Notes under the pieces: generated by a model
Told to the model about the DNA's origin: nothing
The model's input: only the letters and a program-made list of their open reading frames with translations
The model's database searches: none
Shown: positions 1,799 through 32,351 of the stretch, one piece after another
Layout: every line of letters starts with the position of its first letter
Numbering within the stretch: position 1 is the stretch's first letter
Sequence record: NC_061440.1
Direction: 5' to 3' (one strand)
Length of the DNA stretch: 64,000 nucleotides
Position numbers and translations under genes: made by a program

Positions 1799-3563
1799 CT
1801 TTATCTCCCTCGATCAGTATCGCGCGATCATTCGTCGCAACGTTCTGAAAGAGCCTCAGATGCTGGTGGTCAATCAGACGCAGCCACTGGGTCAAATCTT
1901 TTTCCAATGCCCAGGCGATAACTTCCAGATGAAGGATATCATTGTCCCGCCATCTCGTAACGCTATCGACCTGACGCAGCAAGCACCGCTGGAAAATCTG
2001 CTGGCCTGTAGCCAACTGAAAGCGCTGCTGCAAACGCAACGTCTGGTGTTGTTGAACCCAGAAGAAATGCCAAACCCAGGTGACGGCATTCAGATGCCTC
2101 AGCTTTCTGTTCCGCCAGTTGCTGGTGCCGTGTCGGTTGACGGCGTAACTATTCCTAACGCTACTGTGATTGTCGAGCAAAACGGTAACGTCTGGACTGG
2201 TACTTCTAACGGCAGCGGTGTGTTCACTGTTGACGTATCTGGCCTGCAGGAAGGTGTGTTCTCAATCACCATTACTGCTGATGGTTTCGTGCCTGCTCGT
2301 TACAACTTCAATGCTGGTGCGCAACCTCTGCAACCAATGCCTGCGCCTACCGTACACGCTGTCTTTAAAGAGACAACTGTATCGGGAACCACTGTTGCGA
2401 ATGCTAATATCATCGTATCGGTGCAGAGCAAAGAGTTTACTGGTCAGGCTGATGGTCAGGGTGCGTTTAGCATTAACGTTGACCCACTGCCGTTTGACAT
2501 TATTCACCTGACGATCACTGCTGCTGATTATCTGGATAACGTTGTCAATCACATGGTTGACTCTGTTCCTGGTCTGGCTCAGATTAACAGCGCACCGTTC
2601 CTGTCTACTGCGCTGGCAGGTAAGGCAAGTCCAGAAGCTGAAATCGAAATCATCATCACTGGCCAGTCCAATCAGTTCGTTACTGCTGCTGCAAACGGCG
2701 ATTGGACTGCTGTTGTTGGTGCTGTTAAAGGTGAAGTCTCTATTCGTGTGCTGGAAAAAGACGGCTACGACGAAGCGACTGCTACCATGCAGCCTACCAA
2801 ACTGCCTGCTCCTGTACTGGCTGTCGATAACGCTGATAGCATCGGTGAGAATCAGACAGCATTCGGCGGCGCAATCACTGGCCTGAGCGCAGAAGCGAAT
2901 GACGTAGCGGTAACGCTGACTGTGCAAGCAGGTCTGTACGAAGGTACTGTTGACCTGCAATCAAGTCACTGGTCTGTGACTGGTGTTGATGCGAAAGCGG
3001 GTGTGGGTTCTGTAGGTGTTGTGAATCTGACGTCGGCCTTCTATGAAGATGCCTCAACGTCGTTCAACATTCTGGAAGAGTTCGCGCAGCCTACTCTGCA
3101 ACAAGCGCAAGATGGTCAGACTGCGGTAGTTGGTGATACTGTGGCTAGCGCTACAGTTAAGATCACAATGAACGGCGAAACCAAAACTGCGTCTTCAAAC
3201 CCGCAGGGTGCGTTCTCTGTTGATGGATTTACTAACGTTGTGCCTGGTCAGATTCGTATCGAACTGTCACGCAACGGTTACCTGCCTGCGGTCTTCAATG
3301 TCGCTCTGGCAGTACAGGCTCTCGGCCAGCTTGATGCAGATCTGGCTGTCGGTGAAGACACAGTTGCTGGACAAGCGACTCCTGGTTCTACTGTCACCTT
3401 GACGCAGGGTAGCGTTGTTGGTGATGCTGTGGCTGACGCGTCAACGGGTGACTTCATCATCACTCTGTCTGGACCGCTGGTAGAAGGTACACCAGTAGAG
3501 TTGAAAGTACAACACGCGGGCTATGTTGATTACGTTGAAACGTTAACTGTTTCTGCACCTTAA
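1791..3563 (+). CDS. Ig-like/beta-sandwich repeat protein, probable virion decoration or fibre protein
   Basis: 590 aa with about 6 repeats of the type T.V.G.....A.V.+......T..A...G.F.+; Ala/Val/Gly/Thr rich. Confidence 0.7.
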   Translation: MSNFISLDQYRAIIRRNVLKEPQMLVVNQTQPLGQIFFQCPGDNFQMKDIIVPPSRNAIDLTQQAPLENLLACSQLKALLQTQRLVLLNPEEMPNPGDGIQMPQLSVPPVAGAVSVDGVTIPNATVIVEQNGNVWTGTSNGSGVFTVDVSGLQEGVFSITITADGFVPARYNFNAGAQPLQPMPAPTVHAVFKETTVSGTTVANANIIVSVQSKEFTGQADGQGAFSINVDPLPFDIIHLTITAADYLDNVVNHMVDSVPGLAQINSAPFLSTALAGKASPEAEIEIIITGQSNQFVTAAANGDWTAVVGAVKGEVSIRVLEKDGYDEATATMQPTKLPAPVLAVDNADSIGENQTAFGGAITGLSAEANDVAVTLTVQAGLYEGTVDLQSSHWSVTGVDAKAGVGSVGVVNLTSAFYEDASTSFNILEEFAQPTLQQAQDGQTAVVGDTVASATVKITMNGETKTASSNPQGAFSVDGFTNVVPGQIRIELSRNGYLPAVFNVALAVQALGQLDADLAVGEDTVAGQATPGSTVTLTQGSVVGDAVADASTGDFIITLSGPLVEGTPVELKVQHAGYVDYVETLTVSAP

Positions 3564-3572
3564 TCTTACCTG

Positions 3573-3589
3573 AGGGGCTTCGGCCCCTT
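3573..3589 (+). terminator. hairpin with UUCG loop
   Basis: AGGGGC-TTCG-GCCCCT just after the stop; short U tract. Confidence 0.5.
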
Positions 3590-3615
3590 AATGAAATGCA
3601 ATTCGGAGATTTACC

Positions 3616-4269
3616 ATGTCAGATAAAGCAAGCACCAAAGTACAACCTATTACGCTCACCACTTACAACGAGCGTTACGGCCAGAACCCTGTCGCACCTA
3701 TGTACGTTGCTAACCGTACCGATCCTCGCGGCAACGTAATGTTCAGCGCACAGGACGACATGGGACAGCCTGTTCCAGTCCTCGTACCTGCTACCTTCAT
3801 CCCGATCGACCTGACTCAGCAAGCTACCAAAGAGAGCCTGTTGAAATCTACGCACCTGCGCCGCGCACTGCAACGTAACCAGCTGGTCATCATCGACACT
3901 GAAAGCGCTGAAAACTATCTGCGCACCAGTTCTCTGGCTAAAGCGGAAATGCGTAACCTGAACAAAATGGGTAGCGCAATCGCTGCTGACCTGGGCGAAG
4001 AAGGTGGCGAGCTGGCTGCTATCGATCTGGGCGGCGCGGCTAAGCGTAACGTGCAGTTTGAAGGCGGTACCCAGTATTCTGAAAACCAGTTTGTTAACGC
4101 ATTCATCGTTCGTGCTGCCGAAGACAGCGAAGAATCTGACGACAACCTGCAACGTGAATTCCTGTCTCGCGGTATCAACCTGCCGGTTTCTGAGCTGAAC
4201 ATTCTGCGTGAGCACATCACTCGCCCAGCAATCGTTGAGCTGATCATGCAGGCTCTGGAAGACGCGTAA
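3616..4269 (+). CDS. hypothetical protein sharing its N-terminal domain with the 1791..3563 protein
   Basis: GGAG RBS; IDLTQQA-containing domain shared with upstream gene. Confidence 0.8.
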   Translation: MSDKASTKVQPITLTTYNERYGQNPVAPMYVANRTDPRGNVMFSAQDDMGQPVPVLVPATFIPIDLTQQATKESLLKSTHLRRALQRNQLVIIDTESAENYLRTSSLAKAEMRNLNKMGSAIAADLGEEGGELAAIDLGGAAKRNVQFEGGTQYSENQFVNAFIVRAAEDSEESDDNLQREFLSRGINLPVSELNILREHITRPAIVELIMQALEDA

Positions 4270-4285
4270 TTTTAGTGCTACAGAC

Positions 4286-4323
4286 AAAAAAATGGGAGGC
4301 CCCGAAAGGAGTCTCCCATTTTT
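4286..4323. terminator. bidirectional intrinsic terminator
   Basis: A7-TGGGAG...CTCCCA-T5 between convergent genes. Confidence 0.8.
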
Positions 4324-4324
4324 G

Positions 4325-4504
4325 TTACTGCTGCTTTTCCGCTTGCTGTCTTAAACGATCAAGGAATGCCGAACTTTCACCTGGCTTAATGTGTCGCGGT
4401 TCAACTTTGATGCGATTGATCATACGCTGCATACGACGAATGCTTCGGCTACGCAGGTCTTCAATCGAGTGCTGCTTAAACTGCTTTCTGAATTTCAGAG
4501 CCAT
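4325..4504 (-). CDS. small basic protein (59 aa, MALKFRKQFK...)
   Basis: Read by hand; ATG at 4504 with AGGAAAG RBS right after the primase stop; below the ORF-track cutoff. Confidence 0.6.
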   Translation of the reverse strand: MALKFRKQFKQHSIEDLRSRSIRRMQRMINRIKVEPRHIKPGESSAFLDRLRQQAEKQQ

Positions 4505-4505
4505 C

Positions 4506-5564
4506 TTACTTTCCTTTCTGTGTTATCGCTTTAGGTCTATTCCAGCCTAACGCTTTTGCTGGCATGATACACTTCTTACCGTGTATGTCTTTCAGCGTCA
4601 TGCGAACTTCTTTGATCAAGTTCATCGGTGCATTGTCTGGATCGAGCTTAATCAGCTTACCGTCTTCATCATACTCACGCGGTAGCTTGAAATGTTTGAC
4701 AGGCACTGGCGAGTTCTTTTCAAACTCCGCCTTTATTTTATTGCGCAGTAGCTTCCCACCACCATCGTTATCCGTCATCGTGTAGACAACACTCACGCCT
4801 AACATCTCAAGCGTTCTGCGTTTCGTTTCCCCAAACTGTTCGGCGCCGAGTACGGCCAACGCAGGAATCCCATACGACAACAACGCCAGAGCATCACGTG
4901 GACCTTCGACGAGAACAACATAGCGCAACTTGTATTTCTTTAAACACTCTTTGACTAACGGCAGAGGGAACAGGCCTTTCTCTTTCGCCCAATCACCATT
5001 CGAGTTCACATAGCTTGTGCCGTTCATCTGTTTGCGCAGATACGCAGCGATACCACCTATGTATTTCGAACCATGCTTACACGGGAAGAAGCAGACGTTA
5101 CTGCCTGTACGTTGCGCGTTAAGCAGACCACCAGCAGCCTGAACGAGCGCTCCTGGATATCCACGCCATTCAACATCGAGAGGCCATTCCATGTAGCTGT
5201 TACGTCCGAGTGCTTTCATCAATAAACCGACAGAAGCATACGTGCCAATCTTATTGCCTATCTGCTCATACGTTTTGAACAACGCACTTAGGCTGTTTGT
5301 GTTCGCGTCTTTCAGCGCCCAGCCTTTGATCTCTTGCAGCTTCGCGTGTGCTGCTAACTTGTTCCAGCCACCCTTCTCACCGCAACCGAAGCAGTGAAAG
5401 AATCCTAAAGGAATCTCCATCCCAACAGAAGTGTAAATACCACAACTAGGCGTCTTATCACTATGAAACGGACAGCACACCATAACAGTGTCACCGTTAT
5501 ATTTCTTGTCGCCTGGCAATTTGCCAATCTCGTCAAGTATTATCTGATGAACGTCTTCTGCCAT
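4506..5564 (-). CDS. dnaG: DNA primase (CHC2 zinc finger + Toprim)
   Basis: CCPFHSDKTPSC...FHCFGCG zinc finger; VEGPRDALAL and MTDNDGGG Toprim motifs. Confidence 0.9.
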   Translation of the reverse strand: MAEDVHQIILDEIGKLPGDKKYNGDTVMVCCPFHSDKTPSCGIYTSVGMEIPLGFFHCFGCGEKGGWNKLAAHAKLQEIKGWALKDANTNSLSALFKTYEQIGNKIGTYASVGLLMKALGRNSYMEWPLDVEWRGYPGALVQAAGGLLNAQRTGSNVCFFPCKHGSKYIGGIAAYLRKQMNGTSYVNSNGDWAKEKGLFPLPLVKECLKKYKLRYVVLVEGPRDALALLSYGIPALAVLGAEQFGETKRRTLEMLGVSVVYTMTDNDGGGKLLRNKIKAEFEKNSPVPVKHFKLPREYDEDGKLIKLDPDNAPMNLIKEVRMTLKDIHGKKCIMPAKALGWNRPKAITQKGK

Positions 5565-13628: not shown

Positions 13629-14885
13629 ATGGCACGTGGATTTGGTGACATTCAGGACAACAGCAAACGTGATAGTCTGCGTGAGTCCGAAATCTTTGAA
13701 ATCTTCCCGCTCTCAAAGAAAGCAAACGGCAACTGGGTATCAATCCGCCTGTTAGATCTCGACCTGCTTCCTATCAAGAAGCACTGGATCAAGATCATGG
13801 GCGGCAAAGACAAAGATAAAGAAATCAAAATCCCGCGCATGTGCGTTAACTTCGATCCGGATAATCAGAACAAACCTCTGAACGGTATGAAGTGTCCGTA
13901 CTGCGGTATTGCACACGGCAACGACGAATCTGGTGCCCCAGCGCAGTACGACTACAAGTGGTATGCGCAAGCGATCATTCGTGACGAGCAGGCCGCTGCG
14001 CCGCGTAAAATGCCGAAGCTCTCTAAGAAAGAGCAGAAGACCGGCAAGAAAGAAATGGGCAGCGAAGCATGGACTCCAGTTCAGTGTATTCCGCTGTCTA
14101 ACTCTCTGGCGCAGAAAATCAAAGAGCTGGGCGAGCGTAACATTCATACCGTGAAAGATAAAAAATCCGGTAAGAAGTCCAAGCAAGCGTTCCAGGTCAA
14201 CCATCCGAAGTATGGCTGCGATATTGAAATCAAATACAACGCCAAGAAATCTCCGGCCGAGCGTTACACAATCGAACGCGGTGATCATACACCACTGACC
14301 AGCGATGAAAAAGAATATCTGACCTGGGACTTCGACAACTGGCCAGAAATCTACGACATGCTCGGCCGTCTGAACGAAGAAGCCGCTATGGCAGACTTCA
14401 AGAAGATGGACGTTATCGGCGTTAACACCAACGATTCTGACGATGGTGACGACGATGAAGATGACGACGACATGGCGCTGGGCCGCAAGAAGAAAGGCGG
14501 CAAGGCAGACAAGAAAAAACGTCGCAGCGATGATGACGATGACGACGATGAGGACGAAGACGATGAAGATGATCGTCCGTCGAAGTCGAAAAAGTCTAAG
14601 CCGACCAAGTCTCGCAAAATGCTGGACGACGATGAAGATGACGACGACGAAGACGATGAAGATGATCGTCCGTCGAAGTCGAAGAAGTCTAAGGACAAAA
14701 AGTCCAAGTCTTCTAAAAAGTCCAAGCGTTCCAGCGACGATGACGACGACGAAGACGACAAGCCTGCGAAGAAGAAAAAGAAATCTTCTGACGAGGTGAA
14801 ATCATCCGATAAGAAGAAAAAGAAAAAGTCTTCTGATGACGATGACGACGACGCGCCGAAGAAGAAAAAGAAAAAGAAAAAGTAA
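13629..14885 (+). CDS. single-stranded DNA-binding protein (gp32-like) with very long D/K block tail
   Basis: VSIRLL..P.KKHW, RMC...CPYCG, GCDIEIKY...YTI...TPL pattern; directly upstream of recA. Confidence 0.7.
   Translation: MARGFGDIQDNSKRDSLRESEIFEIFPLSKKANGNWVSIRLLDLDLLPIKKHWIKIMGGKDKDKEIKIPRMCVNFDPDNQNKPLNGMKCPYCGIAHGNDESGAPAQYDYKWYAQAIIRDEQAAAPRKMPKLSKKEQKTGKKEMGSEAWTPVQCIPLSNSLAQKIKELGERNIHTVKDKKSGKKSKQAFQVNHPKYGCDIEIKYNAKKSPAERYTIERGDHTPLTSDEKEYLTWDFDNWPEIYDMLGRLNEEAAMADFKKMDVIGVNTNDSDDGDDDEDDDDMALGRKKKGGKADKKKRRSDDDDDDDEDEDDEDDRPSKSKKSKPTKSRKMLDDDEDDDDEDDEDDRPSKSKKSKDKKSKSSKKSKRSSDDDDDEDDKPAKKKKKSSDEVKSSDKKKKKKSSDDDDDDAPKKKKKKKK
14553..14683 (+). repeat. 38-bp perfect direct repeat inside the SSB tail
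   Basis: GACGAAGACGATGAAGATGATCGTCCGTCGAAGTCGAA at 14553-14590 and 14646-14683. Confidence 0.9.
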
Positions 14886-14943: not shown

Positions 14944-17475
14944 ATGGCGAAAACGAACAACAAGGCTGAGAAGAAGGCCGAGAAGAAAGCTAAAGTCAAA
15001 GCTCTTAAAAGCGGAGAAAAGGCAGTAGCTTCTGATGATATCGGCGGCGTTGAAATTCAAGGCTTCGACCTCGCAAGTTTGATGGACGATGTGCTTGACG
15101 GCATCGAAAAGAAAACGAAAGTAAGTTCGCAGGATGCAGCACGACACGCACCGCGTATCTCAACAGGCTGTCTGGCGCTTGACATGTATTTGTCTGGCGG
15201 TATCGTACCTGGTGGCTGGTACACATTCAGCGGCGGTGAGCAGTCATGTAAGTCAACAATGACCATGAGCATTATGGCGAGCCTGATTCGTCTGAAATAC
15301 TCTGGCATTAGCGTGGTGTTCGACTACGAAGGTTCAACCGATGCCGAGTACGTTGCTGGTCAGTTGAAAACGTTCGGCGTTAAGGTCGACCCGAAAACTA
15401 TCTTCGGTGTGCGTGACGATAAAGACGGTAGCTGGATCGTTAAGCCCAAGATCCGTTACTACGCACCAGACAACGGTGAGCGCTTCTTCGATTATATGTC
15501 GATGCTGCGTCGTCGTCTGCCTGACAAAATCGTTGAGAAAGACGGCACCGCGTATTACATCTTTGAGAACAACAAAGAGAACGCGAAGAAGCTGGCAGGC
15601 AAGTACGATAAGAAATGGTTCAGCCGTAACAACCAGTTCAAAGTACCTGCGCCAGACGGTCACATGCAGGCGATGGTTATCGTTGACTCCTATCCTGCGA
15701 TGATGCCAGATCAGGTCGATGACGATGACGGCTCGAAAGCAATGGCGCTGCAAGCGCGTATGTTCTCTGACGGCATCAAACGTTTCCGTGGCGGTATGCG
15801 TCGTAAGATGATGACTATCGTTGGCGTTAACCAGTTGCGTCAGAAGCCCGCAGTAATGTTCGGCAGCCCTGAGTATGAGCCTGGTGGTGATGCGTTGAAG
15901 TTCTATTGCTTCGACCGTGACACTCTGATTCGTACTGACCACGGCGTGTTGACTGCACCGCAGATCAAAGCGCTGATGGACGAAGGCAAAGAAGTTGCCG
16001 TTGAGTCGTTCGATGGTTATCAGAAAATCAATGGTGCGTGGCAGGTTGAAGACGCTCCGTTCCCGTTCGAACTGAATGCTGGTGGTCATGTGTATGTCGG
16101 CTCGGCCGAACATCGCCAGTTCACGTTCATGCACGATCTGACTGCCGAAGGTACTCCAGTTCTGCGTCCTGAATGGAACACGCTGAATCAACTGGCTCAG
16201 TACCCAGAGCAGAAAGGTCAGTACGCTGGTCTGCGTGTACCACCAGTTAAGGAACTGAAAGAGAATGTTCCTGACGCCTTCGATGAAGCCTCACAACTGG
16301 TAAGCAATCTGCTTGGAAACTGTGACCCTGTTAGCAAGCAACTGCCTCTGGTGACTCATGGTGATACCACCTACGCCGCAAACTGTCTGTTCATCGACAC
16401 TGTGGGCGAAGACACCGACACTGGTTCGTTCTCGTTCTGGGTAGAGAAGTTACTGGCCATCGGCGTATTTGCTTACGCTGACGAAAGCGGTATCTGGATT
16501 CCAGGTCTGAACAAACACGAACTGGAAGCGGCTGTAGCGCAGGACGAACTCGGTGCGTTTGCTGGTATCAGTTTTGAAGCGACCTGTCGTCAACGTCAGA
16601 CTCAAATGCTGACCGTGATTGTTGATCACTTCCCAGAGCTGGTGCGTTACGTTCTGGACTATCAGTTGCAGACAGGTGAAGATAAAATCTATCTGGCTCC
16701 TGAGCAGGACTTCGCACAGGCGCTTGACCTGATTCTGCACAAAGAGATCGCTGACTACGATGACATGTACGACCTGCTGATGTTCCAGCTGGCGTATGTC
16801 GATGACTGGTACAACTTCGACTCTGCAATTCTGCCTGTGCCGTTTACGCTTCGTGCGCTCAACGAACAGCGTGAGTTCTGGGACGTGAACGTTGAAGAAA
16901 CGTCGGTAGTAATCACCAACGGCTTCGTCAGTCACAACAGCGACGTGCGTGTGCGTCTGGCTTCTCGTGCGGTACCAGAAGGCTGGCCGAAACTGAAAGA
17001 TGCTCCTGGCATCGTCGGTGAGAAGTCGGTAACAGTTGAAGGCGGTACTGACCGCTATCGCTTCATCGCTGCTAAGACCATTAAGAACAAGATGGGCGGC
17101 ATCCCTAACCAGCAGACGTGGTTACGTTTGTGGGAAGCTGACGGTAACGGTGAAGCTCGCGGCTTCGACCCAGTGTTCGATACGTGGCACTACCTGAAAA
17201 CTCTGGGTCTGGTCAACGGTAGCCGTAAGTCTTTCAAGCTGAAAGCGCCGTGCCCGCTCGCATCTGATGTTAAGATGGATTGGGATGACTTCCGTACACT
17301 CATCAACGGCAGCAAAGAGCAAGTTGTTGGCGTGTGTAAGAAACTGAAAGTCAAACCTGCTGGCCTGCGTCTGTGGTGCTTCAAGTTCGTTCAGTCCACT
17401 AAGGGCAACGAAATGTTGAAGAACGCAATCAGTAAGTCTGCCAAGAAGTCTGATGACGACGACGGCGACGAGTAA
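14944..17475 (+). CDS. recA: RecA/UvsX-like recombinase precursor containing an intein (spliced product about 499 aa)
   Basis: RISTGCLALD, Walker A-like GGEQSCKST, VIVDS, ALQARMFS, VNQLRQK..VMFGSPEYEPGGDALKFY|SDVRVRL, KTIKNK. Confidence 0.95.
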   Translation: MAKTNNKAEKKAEKKAKVKALKSGEKAVASDDIGGVEIQGFDLASLMDDVLDGIEKKTKVSSQDAARHAPRISTGCLALDMYLSGGIVPGGWYTFSGGEQSCKSTMTMSIMASLIRLKYSGISVVFDYEGSTDAEYVAGQLKTFGVKVDPKTIFGVRDDKDGSWIVKPKIRYYAPDNGERFFDYMSMLRRRLPDKIVEKDGTAYYIFENNKENAKKLAGKYDKKWFSRNNQFKVPAPDGHMQAMVIVDSYPAMMPDQVDDDDGSKAMALQARMFSDGIKRFRGGMRRKMMTIVGVNQLRQKPAVMFGSPEYEPGGDALKFYCFDRDTLIRTDHGVLTAPQIKALMDEGKEVAVESFDGYQKINGAWQVEDAPFPFELNAGGHVYVGSAEHRQFTFMHDLTAEGTPVLRPEWNTLNQLAQYPEQKGQYAGLRVPPVKELKENVPDAFDEASQLVSNLLGNCDPVSKQLPLVTHGDTTYAANCLFIDTVGEDTDTGSFSFWVEKLLAIGVFAYADESGIWIPGLNKHELEAAVAQDELGAFAGISFEATCRQRQTQMLTVIVDHFPELVRYVLDYQLQTGEDKIYLAPEQDFAQALDLILHKEIADYDDMYDLLMFQLAYVDDWYNFDSAILPVPFTLRALNEQREFWDVNVEETSVVITNGFVSHNSDVRVRLASRAVPEGWPKLKDAPGIVGEKSVTVEGGTDRYRFIAAKTIKNKMGGIPNQQTWLRLWEADGNGEARGFDPVFDTWHYLKTLGLVNGSRKSFKLKAPCPLASDVKMDWDDFRTLINGSKEQVVGVCKKLKVKPAGLRLWCFKFVQSTKGNEMLKNAISKSAKKSDDDDGDE
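15907..16938 (+). mobile_element. intein (344 aa) with degenerate homing-endonuclease region
   Basis: Starts CFDRDTLI after KFY; block B GSAEHRQF; block F/G FWDVNVEETSVVITNGFVSHN; +1 residue Ser; removal restores GGDALKFYSDVR. Confidence 0.95.
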
Positions 17476-29319: not shown

Positions 29320-29829
29320 ATGATTCCCGAAATCACCCACATCTTCAACGTAATGATGACCAGCCTGAAAGACGTTCGCAGTGTTGAGCGTCTGCATCTC
29401 ATTAACAAGAGCGCCGTGCGTTTTCACCTTAAAGGTAAACAGTATGACGTGCGTGGTCAGTACCCGCTGTTTTCTGTTCACGAAATCGAAGGCGCCATTA
29501 TGTCCTACTCACGGGCAGCCAAAGAGATTGAATCCCAACTCAATGGTGAACCTATCGAAGAAGTCGAAGACAACACGCATGACGCAGCACTGGACGATGT
29601 GCTGATCGCTCATGTTGACAACATGGCCGAAGATCGTGTTCGCGCATACAATGAAGAATGCGGCGGCCCTGACTTAGACCCAATCAATATGCAGCGCACT
29701 TGGCTAAAGACCCACTTTCTGCATATAGGCCACAACACACCTGACCTGTTAGAGACCGTGCTGTACATGGAAGGAAAAGAACGGAGAGAAGAACTGGCGA
29801 AAGCTATTAAGGGGGTATTATGTTTTTAG
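29320..29829 (+). CDS. hypothetical protein (169 aa)
   Basis: AAGGA RBS. Confidence 0.7.
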   Translation: MIPEITHIFNVMMTSLKDVRSVERLHLINKSAVRFHLKGKQYDVRGQYPLFSVHEIEGAIMSYSRAAKEIESQLNGEPIEEVEDNTHDAALDDVLIAHVDNMAEDRVRAYNEECGGPDLDPINMQRTWLKTHFLHIGHNTPDLLETVLYMEGKERREELAKAIKGVLCF

Positions 29830-30101
29830 CGTGGTTTAAATATCTGCGCGCCAAGAAACGCAACAAGTTCATGGCAGAAGTCGTGTCGGCAATTGCTAAA
29901 TTGAATCAACGCGACCGTGACCTGTTGTGTCGTGCATTCAGTCTACCTGCAACTGCTGACGGTCTGTTTACGTTGACGAACATGCCACGCAAAGATTTGG
30001 CTAAGCAGTGCAATCAGTATTACGCCCGTGTGTCGGGCAATAAATGGAACGTGTACGATGCGTTCTGCAAAGTCATTCATACCGCAAGAAAAGGAAAGTA
30101 A
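29820..30101 (+). CDS. hypothetical protein (93 aa)
   Basis: GGGGG RBS; overlaps previous stop. Confidence 0.6.
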   Translation: MFLAWFKYLRAKKRNKFMAEVVSAIAKLNQRDRDLLCRAFSLPATADGLFTLTNMPRKDLAKQCNQYYARVSGNKWNVYDAFCKVIHTARKGK

Positions 30102-30103
30102 CC

Positions 30104-30544
30104 ATGAACGAAATAGATATTCTGATCCGTGAGTTCTCTCGGGCGTATCTGAAAGCAGAAGCATCACCTTTCGGTAACGTCGCATATCACGTACAAGACC
30201 AAACAGACGGCCTGAAAAACATTGCACTCTATCTGCGTTTTCGTTCTGGCCCGCAGGCTCTTTGGCAGCGTCCGTGTTTGGTGCTCGCCACAATTGATGT
30301 TCGTGACTCGGGTAAAGGTACATTCAGTGAGTTGCTTCGCCGCACAAAAGACCTGTGCCGCGAACGTGACTGGATTCTTCAAATTGAAAACGTCCTGACT
30401 CCGCAGTTCAGGAAGTTCTTGCAGCGTGGTGGCTTCAAGCCGTTCGGTGTAGATAAAGATGTACCATTCGGTAGTCTCTACTGGTTCCACGACGAGGCAA
30501 TCCCGCAGCAATGTGCGATGTACCCAGAGAGGGCACACCCATGA
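30104..30544 (+). CDS. GNAT-fold acetyltransferase-like protein
   Basis: LATIDVRDSGKGTFSELL (motif A) and IENV...FLQRGGF (motif B). Confidence 0.6.
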   Translation: MNEIDILIREFSRAYLKAEASPFGNVAYHVQDQTDGLKNIALYLRFRSGPQALWQRPCLVLATIDVRDSGKGTFSELLRRTKDLCRERDWILQIENVLTPQFRKFLQRGGFKPFGVDKDVPFGSLYWFHDEAIPQQCAMYPERAHP

Positions 30545-30981
30545 TTAACTGGCCTGTAGTTCTCTGTGGATTCTTTCCACTGATTGCCTGCTACATAACA
30601 ATCCCGTGGTTCCGTGCTGCTGTTAACCGTAGACTGACGTTCAAGCCATTCGACTACGATGCGCTTGACGAGATACTGACTGACGGCATGCCTGAGAAGT
30701 TGACGATCTCCTGTCTACAGGCTACGTACCGCGTCAACTCACCTGCGCATTCGCACATTGATATTTACGCGCACAAGGACAACGTTGCTGTTGTTCGAAT
30801 GCTGGTGGACCCTAACTTCCCGATAGCACGTTGCTTCCATGACGTGTTGAACGCGAACATAAACGCATTCGCCGTGAAGTCACATAGACCACCGACACTC
30901 ATAATCAATCAGTGTCTCTATCCTGTCGTTGAATATGAGTATGACGATCAGTATCTGTTGATTTACCTTAAACATAAGTAA
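30541..30981 (+). CDS. hypothetical protein with N-terminal hydrophobic segment
   Basis: WPVVLCGFFPLIACYITIPW. Confidence 0.6.
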   Translation: MINWPVVLCGFFPLIACYITIPWFRAAVNRRLTFKPFDYDALDEILTDGMPEKLTISCLQATYRVNSPAHSHIDIYAHKDNVAVVRMLVDPNFPIARCFHDVLNANINAFAVKSHRPPTLIINQCLYPVVEYEYDDQYLLIYLKHK

Positions 30982-30990
30982 GGGACTATC

Positions 30991-31290
30991 ATGGTCACCC
31001 AACAACAACTATCGGAGTTTGCGCGACTGCCTACACTGCACCGTAAAGTGATACTTCGCAGTATGCAGGTTGAGATGTTGGGTGCCTTGCCTGAGCTTAC
31101 TGACATTGTGCGTGAAATGCTTTATCGTGCAATTGTCGTTGATGTAGCTCAAGCTGAACTGGCACTCCTTGCTGCTCGCCAAATGTGTGAGAATAAGGAC
31201 GTTCGTAAAAGCATTGATGACCTACTTCAATTCGCTGCGCGTCTGCATGACGTTGCAACTGATAACTTTCTTTCTGGAGATTTACTATGA
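30991..31290 (+). CDS. hypothetical helical protein (99 aa)
   Basis: AAGGGA RBS. Confidence 0.65.
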   Translation: MVTQQQLSEFARLPTLHRKVILRSMQVEMLGALPELTDIVREMLYRAIVVDVAQAELALLAARQMCENKDVRKSIDDLLQFAARLHDVATDNFLSGDLL

Positions 31291-32351
31291 ATAAGACCGT
31301 TGGCCTGATGATTGATGAAGACGTAATGAATTGGCTGGACATGCTGCTTGCTGGTGAACTAAGCAACGTCTTGGGTGCGTTGAACAATATCGTGTACGCT
31401 CGCCGTCAGGAACTGTCTGTCGAACGTCTGACCGAAGACGAAGACATTGGTGCTCTCTCCCACAAGGAGCTGGAGATCATTCTGCGTTACGCTGCGCCTA
31501 ACCATGAGTACGATACGTCGGTGCTGTCGAACGAACAACTGCTCCGCCTGGCGATGGACGCACAAGGGATCATCTCGTACACACTGCCGTGTCACTGTTC
31601 ACCTATCATGGTTAAACGTGCTTTCGCTAACGGCAACGTGTGCTCACTGCTTGGTGGTTTCTCTAATCGTGCTGATATTGTCATGGCTGTTCACCACTGG
31701 GAATGCGGTCTGTCTAACATCTCGCTCGATGGTGTAACTGGCAACGACGAACGCCCAGACGAACAGGGCATGTACCTGTGCTACGATGAGCACAAGCAAG
31801 TTCGATACGGTCGCCTGTTCAAGAACGCCAACGATGGATGGACATTCAGTGAGTATTATTCTGCTGGTGGATCTACTACGTGGCTTGAAGCGAGTCCAAA
31901 CAATGCGCTTGATGGCGACGACCTGCCAATCAGTCTGCTTTCTAACTGGGTATTCGTTGTTCCAGATCGTTCACCGTCTATCCTCAAACCTGCTGAGGGG
32001 TTCAAACGCCTGTCTGATACACAACGCATCTTCCTGTATCTGCGTAGCCTGAGTCCTCACGTTAAAGCTGAGATCGTCGCACACTTCGACGGCGTTCTGG
32101 ACAATCGATCATTCACCTCTGTCGATCAGATTGGTCGCCTGACCGAGAAAGACTGGCGCGATGCTGCAATTGCTATCGGTGAAGAAGAACGCGGCCAAGA
32201 AGGCGTTCACTACTGGGATGATCGTAGTGCGTGGGCTTGCTTCGTCGCTGTGCTTAATGCTCTGTGCTTCGACATGGACACACGCGACTTCCAACCGCAG
32301 TATGAATATCAGGCTAACGATGACACTATGGAAGAAGACAACAATGGCTAA
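31287..32351 (+). CDS. hypothetical protein (354 aa) with Rho-N-like segment
   Basis: GGAG RBS; IGALSHKELEIILR...LSNEQLLRLA. Confidence 0.75.
   Translation: MNKTVGLMIDEDVMNWLDMLLAGELSNVLGALNNIVYARRQELSVERLTEDEDIGALSHKELEIILRYAAPNHEYDTSVLSNEQLLRLAMDAQGIISYTLPCHCSPIMVKRAFANGNVCSLLGGFSNRADIVMAVHHWECGLSNISLDGVTGNDERPDEQGMYLCYDEHKQVRYGRLFKNANDGWTFSEYYSAGGSTTWLEASPNNALDGDDLPISLLSNWVFVVPDRSPSILKPAEGFKRLSDTQRIFLYLRSLSPHVKAEIVAHFDGVLDNRSFTSVDQIGRLTEKDWRDAAIAIGEEERGQEGVHYWDDRSAWACFVAVLNALCFDMDTRDFQPQYEYQANDDTMEEDNNG

Follow-up and report, generated by a model that had tools for sequence, protein, structure and literature searches.

A previously unannotated class-1 intein in the RecA/UvsX-like recombinase of jumbo phages and the possible reasons for retention of its acidic insert

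Inteins are usually viewed as selfish elements that pass through a cycle of invasion, endonuclease decay, and loss, and a question for the field is whether some of them are kept because they regulate the host protein. This question is raised by a RecA/UvsX-like recombinase gene located in a 64,000-nucleotide stretch of sequence record NC_061440.1 (record positions 186001-250000; hereafter, the window, with all coordinates counted from its first letter unless otherwise stated). The window is 100% identical to pEa_SNUABM_22, a 265-kb Alexandravirus jumbo phage of Erwinia amylovora. A first reading of the letters (the original prediction) had proposed that positions 15907-16938 encode an intein with an eroded, acidic endonuclease region, possibly a domesticated splicing switch. 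The computational analysis described here identifies this region as a genuine class-1 intein, previously unannotated. Its persistence is best explained—with a rough probability of 0.6—by a fixed, vertically inherited intein whose central domain is endonuclease-dead and has been retained by constraint.

Identity of the intein and its insertion site

The flanks of the intein are recognizable as RecA, matching PF00154 at 1.9e-23 and PHROG 97 (UvsX-like recombinase) at 1e-75, with the profile match interrupted between them. The interruption runs without a stop codon from Cys-Phe-Asp to Ser-His-Asn, is followed by Ser-Asp-Val-Arg, and has exactly the length of 344 amino acids (aa) and the coordinates originally predicted after the sequence GGDALKFY; the insertion site is accordingly referred to as KFY|S. 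Among 41 distinct family variants, Cys1, Ser66 and His69 of block B, Asp326 of block F, His343, and Asn344 are invariant (41/41), while the variants otherwise diverge at up to 70% of positions. Together with the Ser residue at position +1, this corresponds to the canonical Cys1...His-Asn/Ser+1 arrangement that had been recognized from the sequence. An AlphaFold2 model of the intein, built with 19 homologues, showed a mean predicted local distance difference test score (pLDDT) of 87.9 and a predicted template modelling score (pTM) of 0.87. The termini of the model form a Hint fold, superposing on the NpuDnaB intein at Z 16.3 (root-mean-square deviation 2.1 Å over 129 aligned residues), and on the NrdJ-1 and TliVMA inteins at Z 16.2 and 16.0, respectively. 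In all, 30 chains reached a Z score of at least 8 against the model, nearly all of them inteins or Hint domains, and the top rows of the Foldseek search were PI-PfuI, TliVMA, PhoVMA, and PI-SceI, with E values of 6e-7 to 2e-4. From this fold and the invariant motifs, it is therefore concluded that 15907-16938 encodes a class-1 intein (Table 1).

The curated intein profiles PF14890, TIGR01443, and TIGR01445 did not detect the KFY|S intein; TIGR01443 gave 13.5 bits at intein residues 326-344, below its cut-off of 15.6. These missing matches reflect insufficient profile sensitivity and are not in conflict with the structure and motif evidence. No sequence record mentions an intein in the recombinase gene, and no published description was found in literature searches. 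The gene is annotated as "UvsX-like recombinase" in RefSeq and as "hypothetical protein" in GenBank. In practical terms, an intein missed by Pfam and NCBIfam is thus present in a gene that carries only one or the other of these labels in about 50 deposited genomes.

Intein-less orthologues of approximately 500 aa (versus the 843-aa precursor), many of them from metagenomes, read ALKFY-SDVR without interruption, examples being those of Dickeya phage JA11 (501 aa) and Pseudomonas phage PaBG, and the proteins P0041-P0058. Since Ser+1 is present in these alleles as well, it belongs to the host protein. We infer that the KFY|S intein splices out of the precursor. In a phmmer alignment, E. coli RecA chains match the N-extein up to GGNALKFY (residues 140-218 of 2reb), ending at Tyr218. 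This alignment places KFY|S just after the DNA-binding loop L2, as had been proposed, at the start of the next core strand and at the protomer interface.

Five RecA/RadA intein sites have been tabulated, with the Mycobacterium tuberculosis (Mtu) intein at site a (252-691) and the Mycobacterium leprae (Mle) intein at site b (206-570) (Topilina et al., 2015, PMC4513877, their Table 1), in agreement with the mycobacterial sites VVKNK|C and MFG|S named in the original prediction. In mycobacterial numbering, KFY is residue 219, compared with 205 for site b and 251 for site a; the KFY|S site is therefore neither of the two, being preceded by site b at a distance of 14 residues and followed by site a at about 32. 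Like the intein described here, the mycobacterial RecA inteins are of class 1 and carry a LAGLIDADG-type insert in the monomer-monomer interface region of RecA (PMC4513877), and the Mtu RecA splicing domain superposes on the KFY|S intein model at Z 15.3. Sequence similarity between the KFY|S intein and the mycobacterial RecA inteins was, however, not detectable. Moreover, the KFY|S intein differs from them in having a single-motif, acidic, orphan insert, in residing in a phage, and in being fixed across genera rather than sporadic.

A closer counterpart in position is site d, occupied in Acinetobacter baumannii RecA (216-370) by a 155-aa mini-intein at the monomer-monomer interface (PMC4513877). 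Compared by reported coordinates only, site d lies 1-3 residues from Y217/S219 of an Acinetobacter RecA (K215 F216 Y217 A218 S219). Thus, KFY|S is at or next to the published RecA-d site, and is hence not clearly new. The two inteins may share the same or a neighboring insertion point, and both lie at a protomer interface, but the A. baumannii intein is a mini-intein without a central domain and is encoded by a bacterial chromosome. In a search with the Acinetobacter RecA, intein-bearing A. baumannii proteins were not among the matches listed. One longer match in that search, a 459-aa "RecA" (P0163), contains no intein; about 110 of its residues are duplicated internally, and it was rejected as an assembly artefact.

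Table 1. Features of the recombinase gene and its intein, by position in the window
Feature	Position	Strand	Basis or remark
RecA/UvsX-like recombinase precursor gene	14944..17475	+	843-aa open reading frame (ORF) plus stop
N-extein, 321 aa, ending GGDALKFY	14944..15906	+	equivalent of E. coli RecA to Tyr218
Empty MFG|S site (Gly307|Ser308), 15864|15865	15862..15867	+	RecA-b position; intein-bearing in some relatives
Intein, 344 aa, class 1, Cys1 ... His343-Asn344, then Ser+1	15907..16938	+	translation, motifs, model
Hint N-terminal part, intein residues 1-112; block A Cys1, block B G-S-A-E-H-R-Q	15907..16242	+	model beta-strands 8-110; nonsynonymous/synonymous rate ratio (dN/dS) 0.17
LAGLIDADG-like half-domain, residues 121-214, alpha-beta-beta-alpha-beta-beta-alpha; most variable segment	16267..16548	+	model, fold matches
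Acidic four-helix bundle, residues 221-306	16567..16824	+	model helices 223-238, 243-256, 269-277, 288-304
Hint C-terminal part, residues 307-344; blocks F and G (F-W-D-V-N-V ... T-N-G-F-V-S-H-N)	16825..16938	+	model strands 308-343
C-extein, 178 aa plus stop, beginning S-D-V-R-V-R-L with Ser+1 nucleophile	16939..17475	+	translation

Structure and composition of the central insert

In the AlphaFold2 model, the insert between the two Hint parts (residues ~113-306) consists of one LAGLIDADG-like half-domain and a four-helix bundle. The fold neighbors of the half-domain are WhiA (Z 7.2-7.6), I-DmoI (6.0-6.3), the endonuclease part of TliVMA (5.8), and I-Vdi141I (5.3-5.5). A Foldseek search with the insert, as suggested in the original prediction, returned LAGLIDADG-family proteins in its top rows (I-MsoI and I-CreI, E 0.03-0.1), and LAGLIDADG clusters in the ESM Atlas scored 0.85-0.86, which counts as a lead only. 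The strength of the assignment, which is modest, thus lies in the family consistency among the matches and not in any one strong match. The best of these matches, WhiA, has the LAGLIDADG fold but is no longer a nuclease, having been kept for another role; it contains two LAGLIDADG units and a helix-turn-helix, and binds DNA. The phage insert differs from it in combining one unit with a helical bundle, in its acidic surface, and in its location inside an intein. With modest confidence, then, the central domain can be regarded as derived from a LAGLIDADG homing endonuclease of which one recognizable half is left.

Several features of this half-domain are unlike those of a working endonuclease. 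An intact LAGLIDADG motif had been reported as missing, and indeed neither Pfam nor PHROG gave a match for the insert, with no Pfam match at E values up to 1 in any of 19 members. The sequence SQLVSNLLGNCD, originally named as a motif remnant, does form a motif-like first helix, but of the 41 variants only 24 have the Asp residue (D140) with which this helix ends. The other proposed remnant, WVEKLLAIGV, turned out to be the second helix of the first unit, and not a second motif; a better candidate for a remnant of motif 2 is provided by residues 232-245, which include the near-invariant Asp240. This residue, located near the end of helix 223-238, is kept in 39/41 variants, and no sheet follows that helix. 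Instead of the two-unit LAGLIDADG architecture, a single unit (121-214) is followed by four helices (221-306). That the bundle is the remainder of a second LAGLIDADG unit, given that helix 223-238 ends in Asp240, is a conjecture. Furthermore, the putative DNA-binding sheet does not have the character of a basic or polar saddle, containing 3.2% Lys plus Arg and 9.9% Asp plus Glu family-wide.

The strong acidity noted in the original prediction is evident over the whole insert. Its central 194 aa have a net charge of -25 (about -13 per 100 aa) and an isoelectric point (pI) of 4.05, in contrast to the basic exteins (pI ~9.3), and the net charge of the central domain ranges from -12 to -27 across all relatives. 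Only 3 of 52 ORFs in the window, all of them encoding low-complexity proteins, are more acidic per residue. Given this acidity and the lack of a conserved motif-1 acid, the central domain most likely neither binds nor cuts DNA any more, as judged from sequence and model. The codon usage is, as proposed, in the style of the core genes and in line with the genome as a whole, with a GC content at third codon positions of 0.56 (window mean, 0.545 +/- 0.03) and an index resembling the codon adaptation index of 0.83 (window, 0.75 +/- 0.07).

The helical bundle contains the best-conserved residues of the intein apart from those for splicing. Gln229, Pro243, Leu245, Gln294, Ala296, and Tyr297 are invariant, and Arg230, Ile238, Asp240, Phe242, Glu244, Arg247, Asp289, and Asp300 are near-invariant; the bundle has two motif blocks, R-Q-R-Q...V-I-x-D-x-F-P-E-L-x-R and D-x-Y-D-L-L-M-x-Q-L-A-Y-V-E/D-D-W. 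Fold comparison of the bundle gave no convincing match. The only proteins returned were polyprenyl synthases, sigma-factor domains, and integrase N-domains, with Z scores of 4-5.8, which are too low to be meaningful for helical proteins. A profile of the insert, run against 1.84 billion representative proteins, retrieved its own family only, as did a search of BFVD, where two relatives have independently predicted models that match the insert with TM scores of 0.92-0.94. Two further candidates were rejected. A match to AcrIF7 over residues 159-225 (phmmer against the PDB, E 0.06) was lost with the family profile and is attributed to chance. Sub-threshold Pfam matches to the CUE domain in 6-7 closely related members (best E 0.004) are probably due to the F-P-E-L motif, and membership was not accepted.

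Distribution, descent, and selection

By tblastn, 53 phage records contain the complete intein, always at the same site and with identities from 100% down to 29.5%, and metagenomic proteins add more. The carriers include Alexandravirus (with Dickeya phage AD1), Sasquatchvirus Y3, Yoloswagvirus, Rivsvirus SNUABM_5, Yersinia phage fHe-Yen9-02, and the phages Sen-NF and Afa-NA1. In the 41 distinct variants, the intein is 328-352 aa long and has never been trimmed to a mini-intein. All known homologues with at least 79% N-extein identity have the intein at KFY|S. The search for intein-less alleles proposed in the original prediction was carried out as a length-restricted search among 5.8 billion proteins and was successful, with the closest such alleles showing N-extein identities of 71% and 67% (JA11-like phages of Salmondvirus), and all others at most 57%. 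Contigs of relatives were present in a phyllosphere metagenome and one other run, and none of them showed a joint skipping the intein; the phage was absent from two raw-read runs. When the intein motifs were used to scan 185,579 species genomes, they yielded only two phage contigs, with the recA intein at 65-67% identity, in a metagenome-assembled genome labelled Raoultibacter sp. (JAVWLC010000071.1 and JAVWLC010000206.1; L030 and L031); these are almost certainly mis-binned jumbo-phage contigs. A further observation on the labels of carriers concerns the records of Salmonella phage Sen-NF (PV359490.1, L017) and Alcaligenes phage Afa-NA1 (PV550095.1), which give identical tblastn scores (29.5%, 1e-30), state different hosts, and are 78-109 kb long, compared with approximately 260 kb for their relatives. 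Both records seem to be fragments from a single jumbo-phage lineage, so that their host labels may be questionable.

The extein tree was built from the N-extein alone, and the exteins were searched separately. Rooted by the intein-less outgroups, the N-extein tree, in which the relevant node is weak, is compatible with a single gain of the KFY|S intein and requires no more than one loss in addition, in the Salmondvirus lineage. The intein tree matches the deep structure of the N-extein tree, with few local differences. Thus, the intein is fixed in the clade and its tree is congruent with that of the host gene, rather than showing the sporadic distribution expected of spread by homing. The proposal of a non-mobile intein with a large retained insert is consistent with these findings, and an old, fixed, vertically inherited, non-mobile KFY|S intein would be the best-supported reading of the sequence comparisons.

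A second intein found in some relatives at MFG|S, the classical site b according to the E. coli RecA alignment numbering and PMC4513877, provides a contrast to the KFY|S intein. In pEa_SNUABM_17 (L011:1909-2958), a fHe-Yen9-02-like sequence (L025), and the proteins P0004, P0011, P0012, P0037, and P0038, an intein of approximately 350 aa follows Gly307, with the junctions MFG|CLHG...VHN|SPEYEP; in these relatives, an extein segment of 14 residues (SPEYEPGGDALKFY) separates the two inteins. Both are of class 1, are similar in length, use a Ser+1 nucleophile, and interrupt the same gene. The second intein, however, is recognized by PF14890 (9.7e-13) and TIGR01445 (9.6e-9), contains two LAGLIDADG-like motifs, and is scattered across four sub-clades, its site being empty in the window. 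Between hosts, its identity is 71-97%, compared with 39-82% for the KFY|S inteins of the same hosts, and in one pair it reaches 97% compared with 91% for the N-extein. These identities suggest that the second intein is young and mobile and has recently spread horizontally.

Selection on the KFY|S intein was estimated as dN/dS pooled over seven independent pairs. The exteins gave values of 0.04 and 0.06, the Hint parts 0.17 and 0.19, the helical bundle 0.18, and the LAGLIDADG-like half 0.30. By these ratios, the insert would be relaxed relative to RecA, yet clearly not neutral, that is, under purifying selection. The description of the endonuclease region as eroded was accordingly overstated: the model is confident (pLDDT 88), dN/dS is 0.30 and 0.18 in its two parts, and the insert is unshortened in all 41 variants.

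Within the insert, residues 121-210 form a hot segment in which, between some otherwise close phages, the proportion of nonsynonymous differences (pN) is 0.25-0.41, compared with 0.05 or less in the flanks; the synonymous divergence (dS) is raised there, too. In a relative from the phyllosphere metagenome (run X1), a 253-nt stretch (16289-16543) is swapped for 244 unrelated letters between flanks that are 95-99% identical. Cassette-like differences in the same segment were also observed between pEa_SNUABM_22 and SNUABM_2, and between SNUABM_1 and a metagenomic contig. The hot segment looks like a cassette under loose constraint that has been exchanged by recombination; the sequence comparisons neither show nor exclude diversifying selection in residues 121-210.

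Proposed constraint and alternative explanations for retention

According to the preferred explanation, the 843-aa precursor would be translated first and would probably be unable to work as a recombinase. The Hint domain would then excise itself by means of Cys1, block-B His69, block-F Asp326, His343-Asn344, and Ser+1, giving a basic RecA of 499 aa and a free acidic intein of 344 aa in equal amounts. The intein would have entered the ancestor of the enterobacterial jumbo-phage clade that includes Alexandravirus, Sasquatchvirus, Yoloswagvirus, Rivsvirus, fHe-Yen9-02, and the Sen-NF-like phages, would have become fixed, and would since have been inherited vertically with the recombinase gene, while the central LAGLIDADG-derived domain would have lost its endonuclease function and been kept under purifying selection. 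Two reasons for this persistence may be proposed. First, at an essential site, only an exact deletion would be tolerated. Second, the central module—above all the helical bundle—may now be part of the fold needed for splicing; because the module is packed into a rigid whole in the model (pTM 0.87), it may be required for a splicing-competent fold. Constraint would thus be the most economical reason for retention.

Several points weigh against this explanation. Structural retention alone does not obviously account for the many invariant polar residues of the bundle, or for an acidity that has been kept across 70% sequence divergence. The LAGLIDADG assignment is based on modest scores (Z 5-7.6, Foldseek E 0.03-0.1, ESM feature score 0.85), and the conservation of Asp240 in 39/41 variants, as a possible remnant of motif 2, leaves room for a non-canonical active site. 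Support is weak (85/45) for where Sen-NF falls with respect to the intein-less Salmondvirus branch, which makes the history of gain and loss tentative.

A domesticated regulatory intein is a tentative alternative, to which we give a clearly lower probability. Splicing would then be conditional on single-stranded DNA, ATP, metal, redox state, temperature, or infection time, with the acidic central module sensing the signal or docking on the basic RecA exteins, and the recombinase would be released when needed. Fixation and vertical inheritance over several genera, purifying selection on the whole insert, with the bundle as constrained as the splicing domain, the invariant polar residues in the bundle, a conserved acidity opposite basic exteins (pI ~9.3), and the location next to L2 at the protomer interface all fit this idea. 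On the other hand, selection to maintain splicing acts on any intein at an essential site, and it is common for fixed inteins to have dead endonucleases. The polar residues, the conserved acidity, and the position at L2 and the protomer interface are suggestive but not evidence of regulation. A redox trap in particular would lack a conserved Cys pair: apart from the catalytic one, the Cys residues of the intein are variable, and at extein position -8 the Cys is replaced by Gly here.

Control of splicing by the extein has been documented for the Pyrococcus horikoshii (Pho) RadA intein (PMC4513877). More generally, the conditionally splicing inteins of Pho RadA and mycobacterial DnaB (DnaB i1) reside at functional sites of RecA-superfamily ATPases, and extein contacts, redox state, or zinc control whether they splice (PMC4513877; PMC6195587; PMC7360933). 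These are mini-inteins with experimental evidence, whereas the phage intein, which is without a conserved Cys pair, is known from sequence and model.

Less probable still is that the excised intein moonlights. Produced 1:1 with RecA, it could act through its acidic surface as a DNA mimic or protein decoy, modulating RecA filaments in the manner of DinI-type acidic regulators or binding a host nuclease or defence protein, with the variable sheet as the interaction surface. The net charge of approximately -13 per 100 aa, which places the insert with the most acidic proteins of the window, is consistent with such a role, as is the absence of relatives outside the intein's own family; furthermore, the former DNA-binding sheet is the most variable part, subject to cassette-like replacement (pN 0.25-0.41 versus <=0.05, with the 253-nt block swapped). 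However, the variable segment has an elevated dS as well, and its dN/dS remains under 1, so that recombination with relaxed constraint fits as well as an arms race, and the weak similarity to AcrIF7 (E 0.06) disappears with the family profile.

Two other explanations are unlikely. An active, mobile, but non-canonical homing endonuclease, working as an I-CreI-like single-motif dimer or using Asp240, would be in keeping with the LAGLIDADG structures that dominate the weak fold matches (some I-MsoI and I-CreI Foldseek alignments span the whole insert), with purifying selection on the insert, with Asp240 in 39/41 variants, and with the availability of intein-less targets in Salmondvirus phages. 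We nonetheless consider it very improbable: the sheet that would bind DNA is acidic, with few Lys and Arg residues, the motif-1 acid is not conserved, and the intein is not sporadic and evolves faster than the host gene, unlike the mobile-looking second intein. The least probable explanation, a permanent non-splicing Hint-fold insertion with the 843-aa protein as the working form, would agree with the failure of profile libraries to recognize the KFY|S intein, but is made unlikely by the invariance of all residues for the four splicing steps despite up to 70% change elsewhere and by the interruption of a core strand at the protomer interface.

Exaptation of the insert, whether the bundle and the variable sheet gate splicing on the basic exteins or the free intein serves after excision as a stoichiometric DNA-mimic or decoy partner, is likewise rather unlikely in our estimation. 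If true, it would make the intein a built-in regulator of recombination-dependent replication across a jumbo-phage clade. The family offers a natural comparison, in which an old, fixed intein with a probably dead but unshrunk endonuclease and a conserved orphan helical module can be set against intein-less sister alleles as controls; thus, retention for function versus retention by constraint becomes directly testable. In some relatives, in addition, this old intein and a young, mobile, canonical one are found in one gene, 14 residues apart.

Other inteins may also be present in the same genome. Outside the window, one candidate (G000:C1 ~29628-31796; L028:214-2382) lies within a C-5 cytosine DNA methyltransferase encoded by a 723-aa ORF, and another (G000:C1 ~2543-5254; L027:829-3540) lies within a 904-aa ORF of unknown function. 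Both gave sub-threshold matches to PF14890 and Hint_2, and the phage may thus carry at least three inteins.

The recombinase gene (14944-17475, +) is preceded by a sigma-factor gene and a gene annotated as encoding a single-stranded DNA-binding protein (SSB). In the latter (13629-14885, +), located just upstream of recA, poly-Asp/Glu blocks alternate with poly-Lys blocks over the final ~150 aa. An AcrVA2-like gene (PF26125; 18813-19856, +) was observed downstream of recA, at a distance of three genes, and the same holds for a distant relative (L026:7286-8329).

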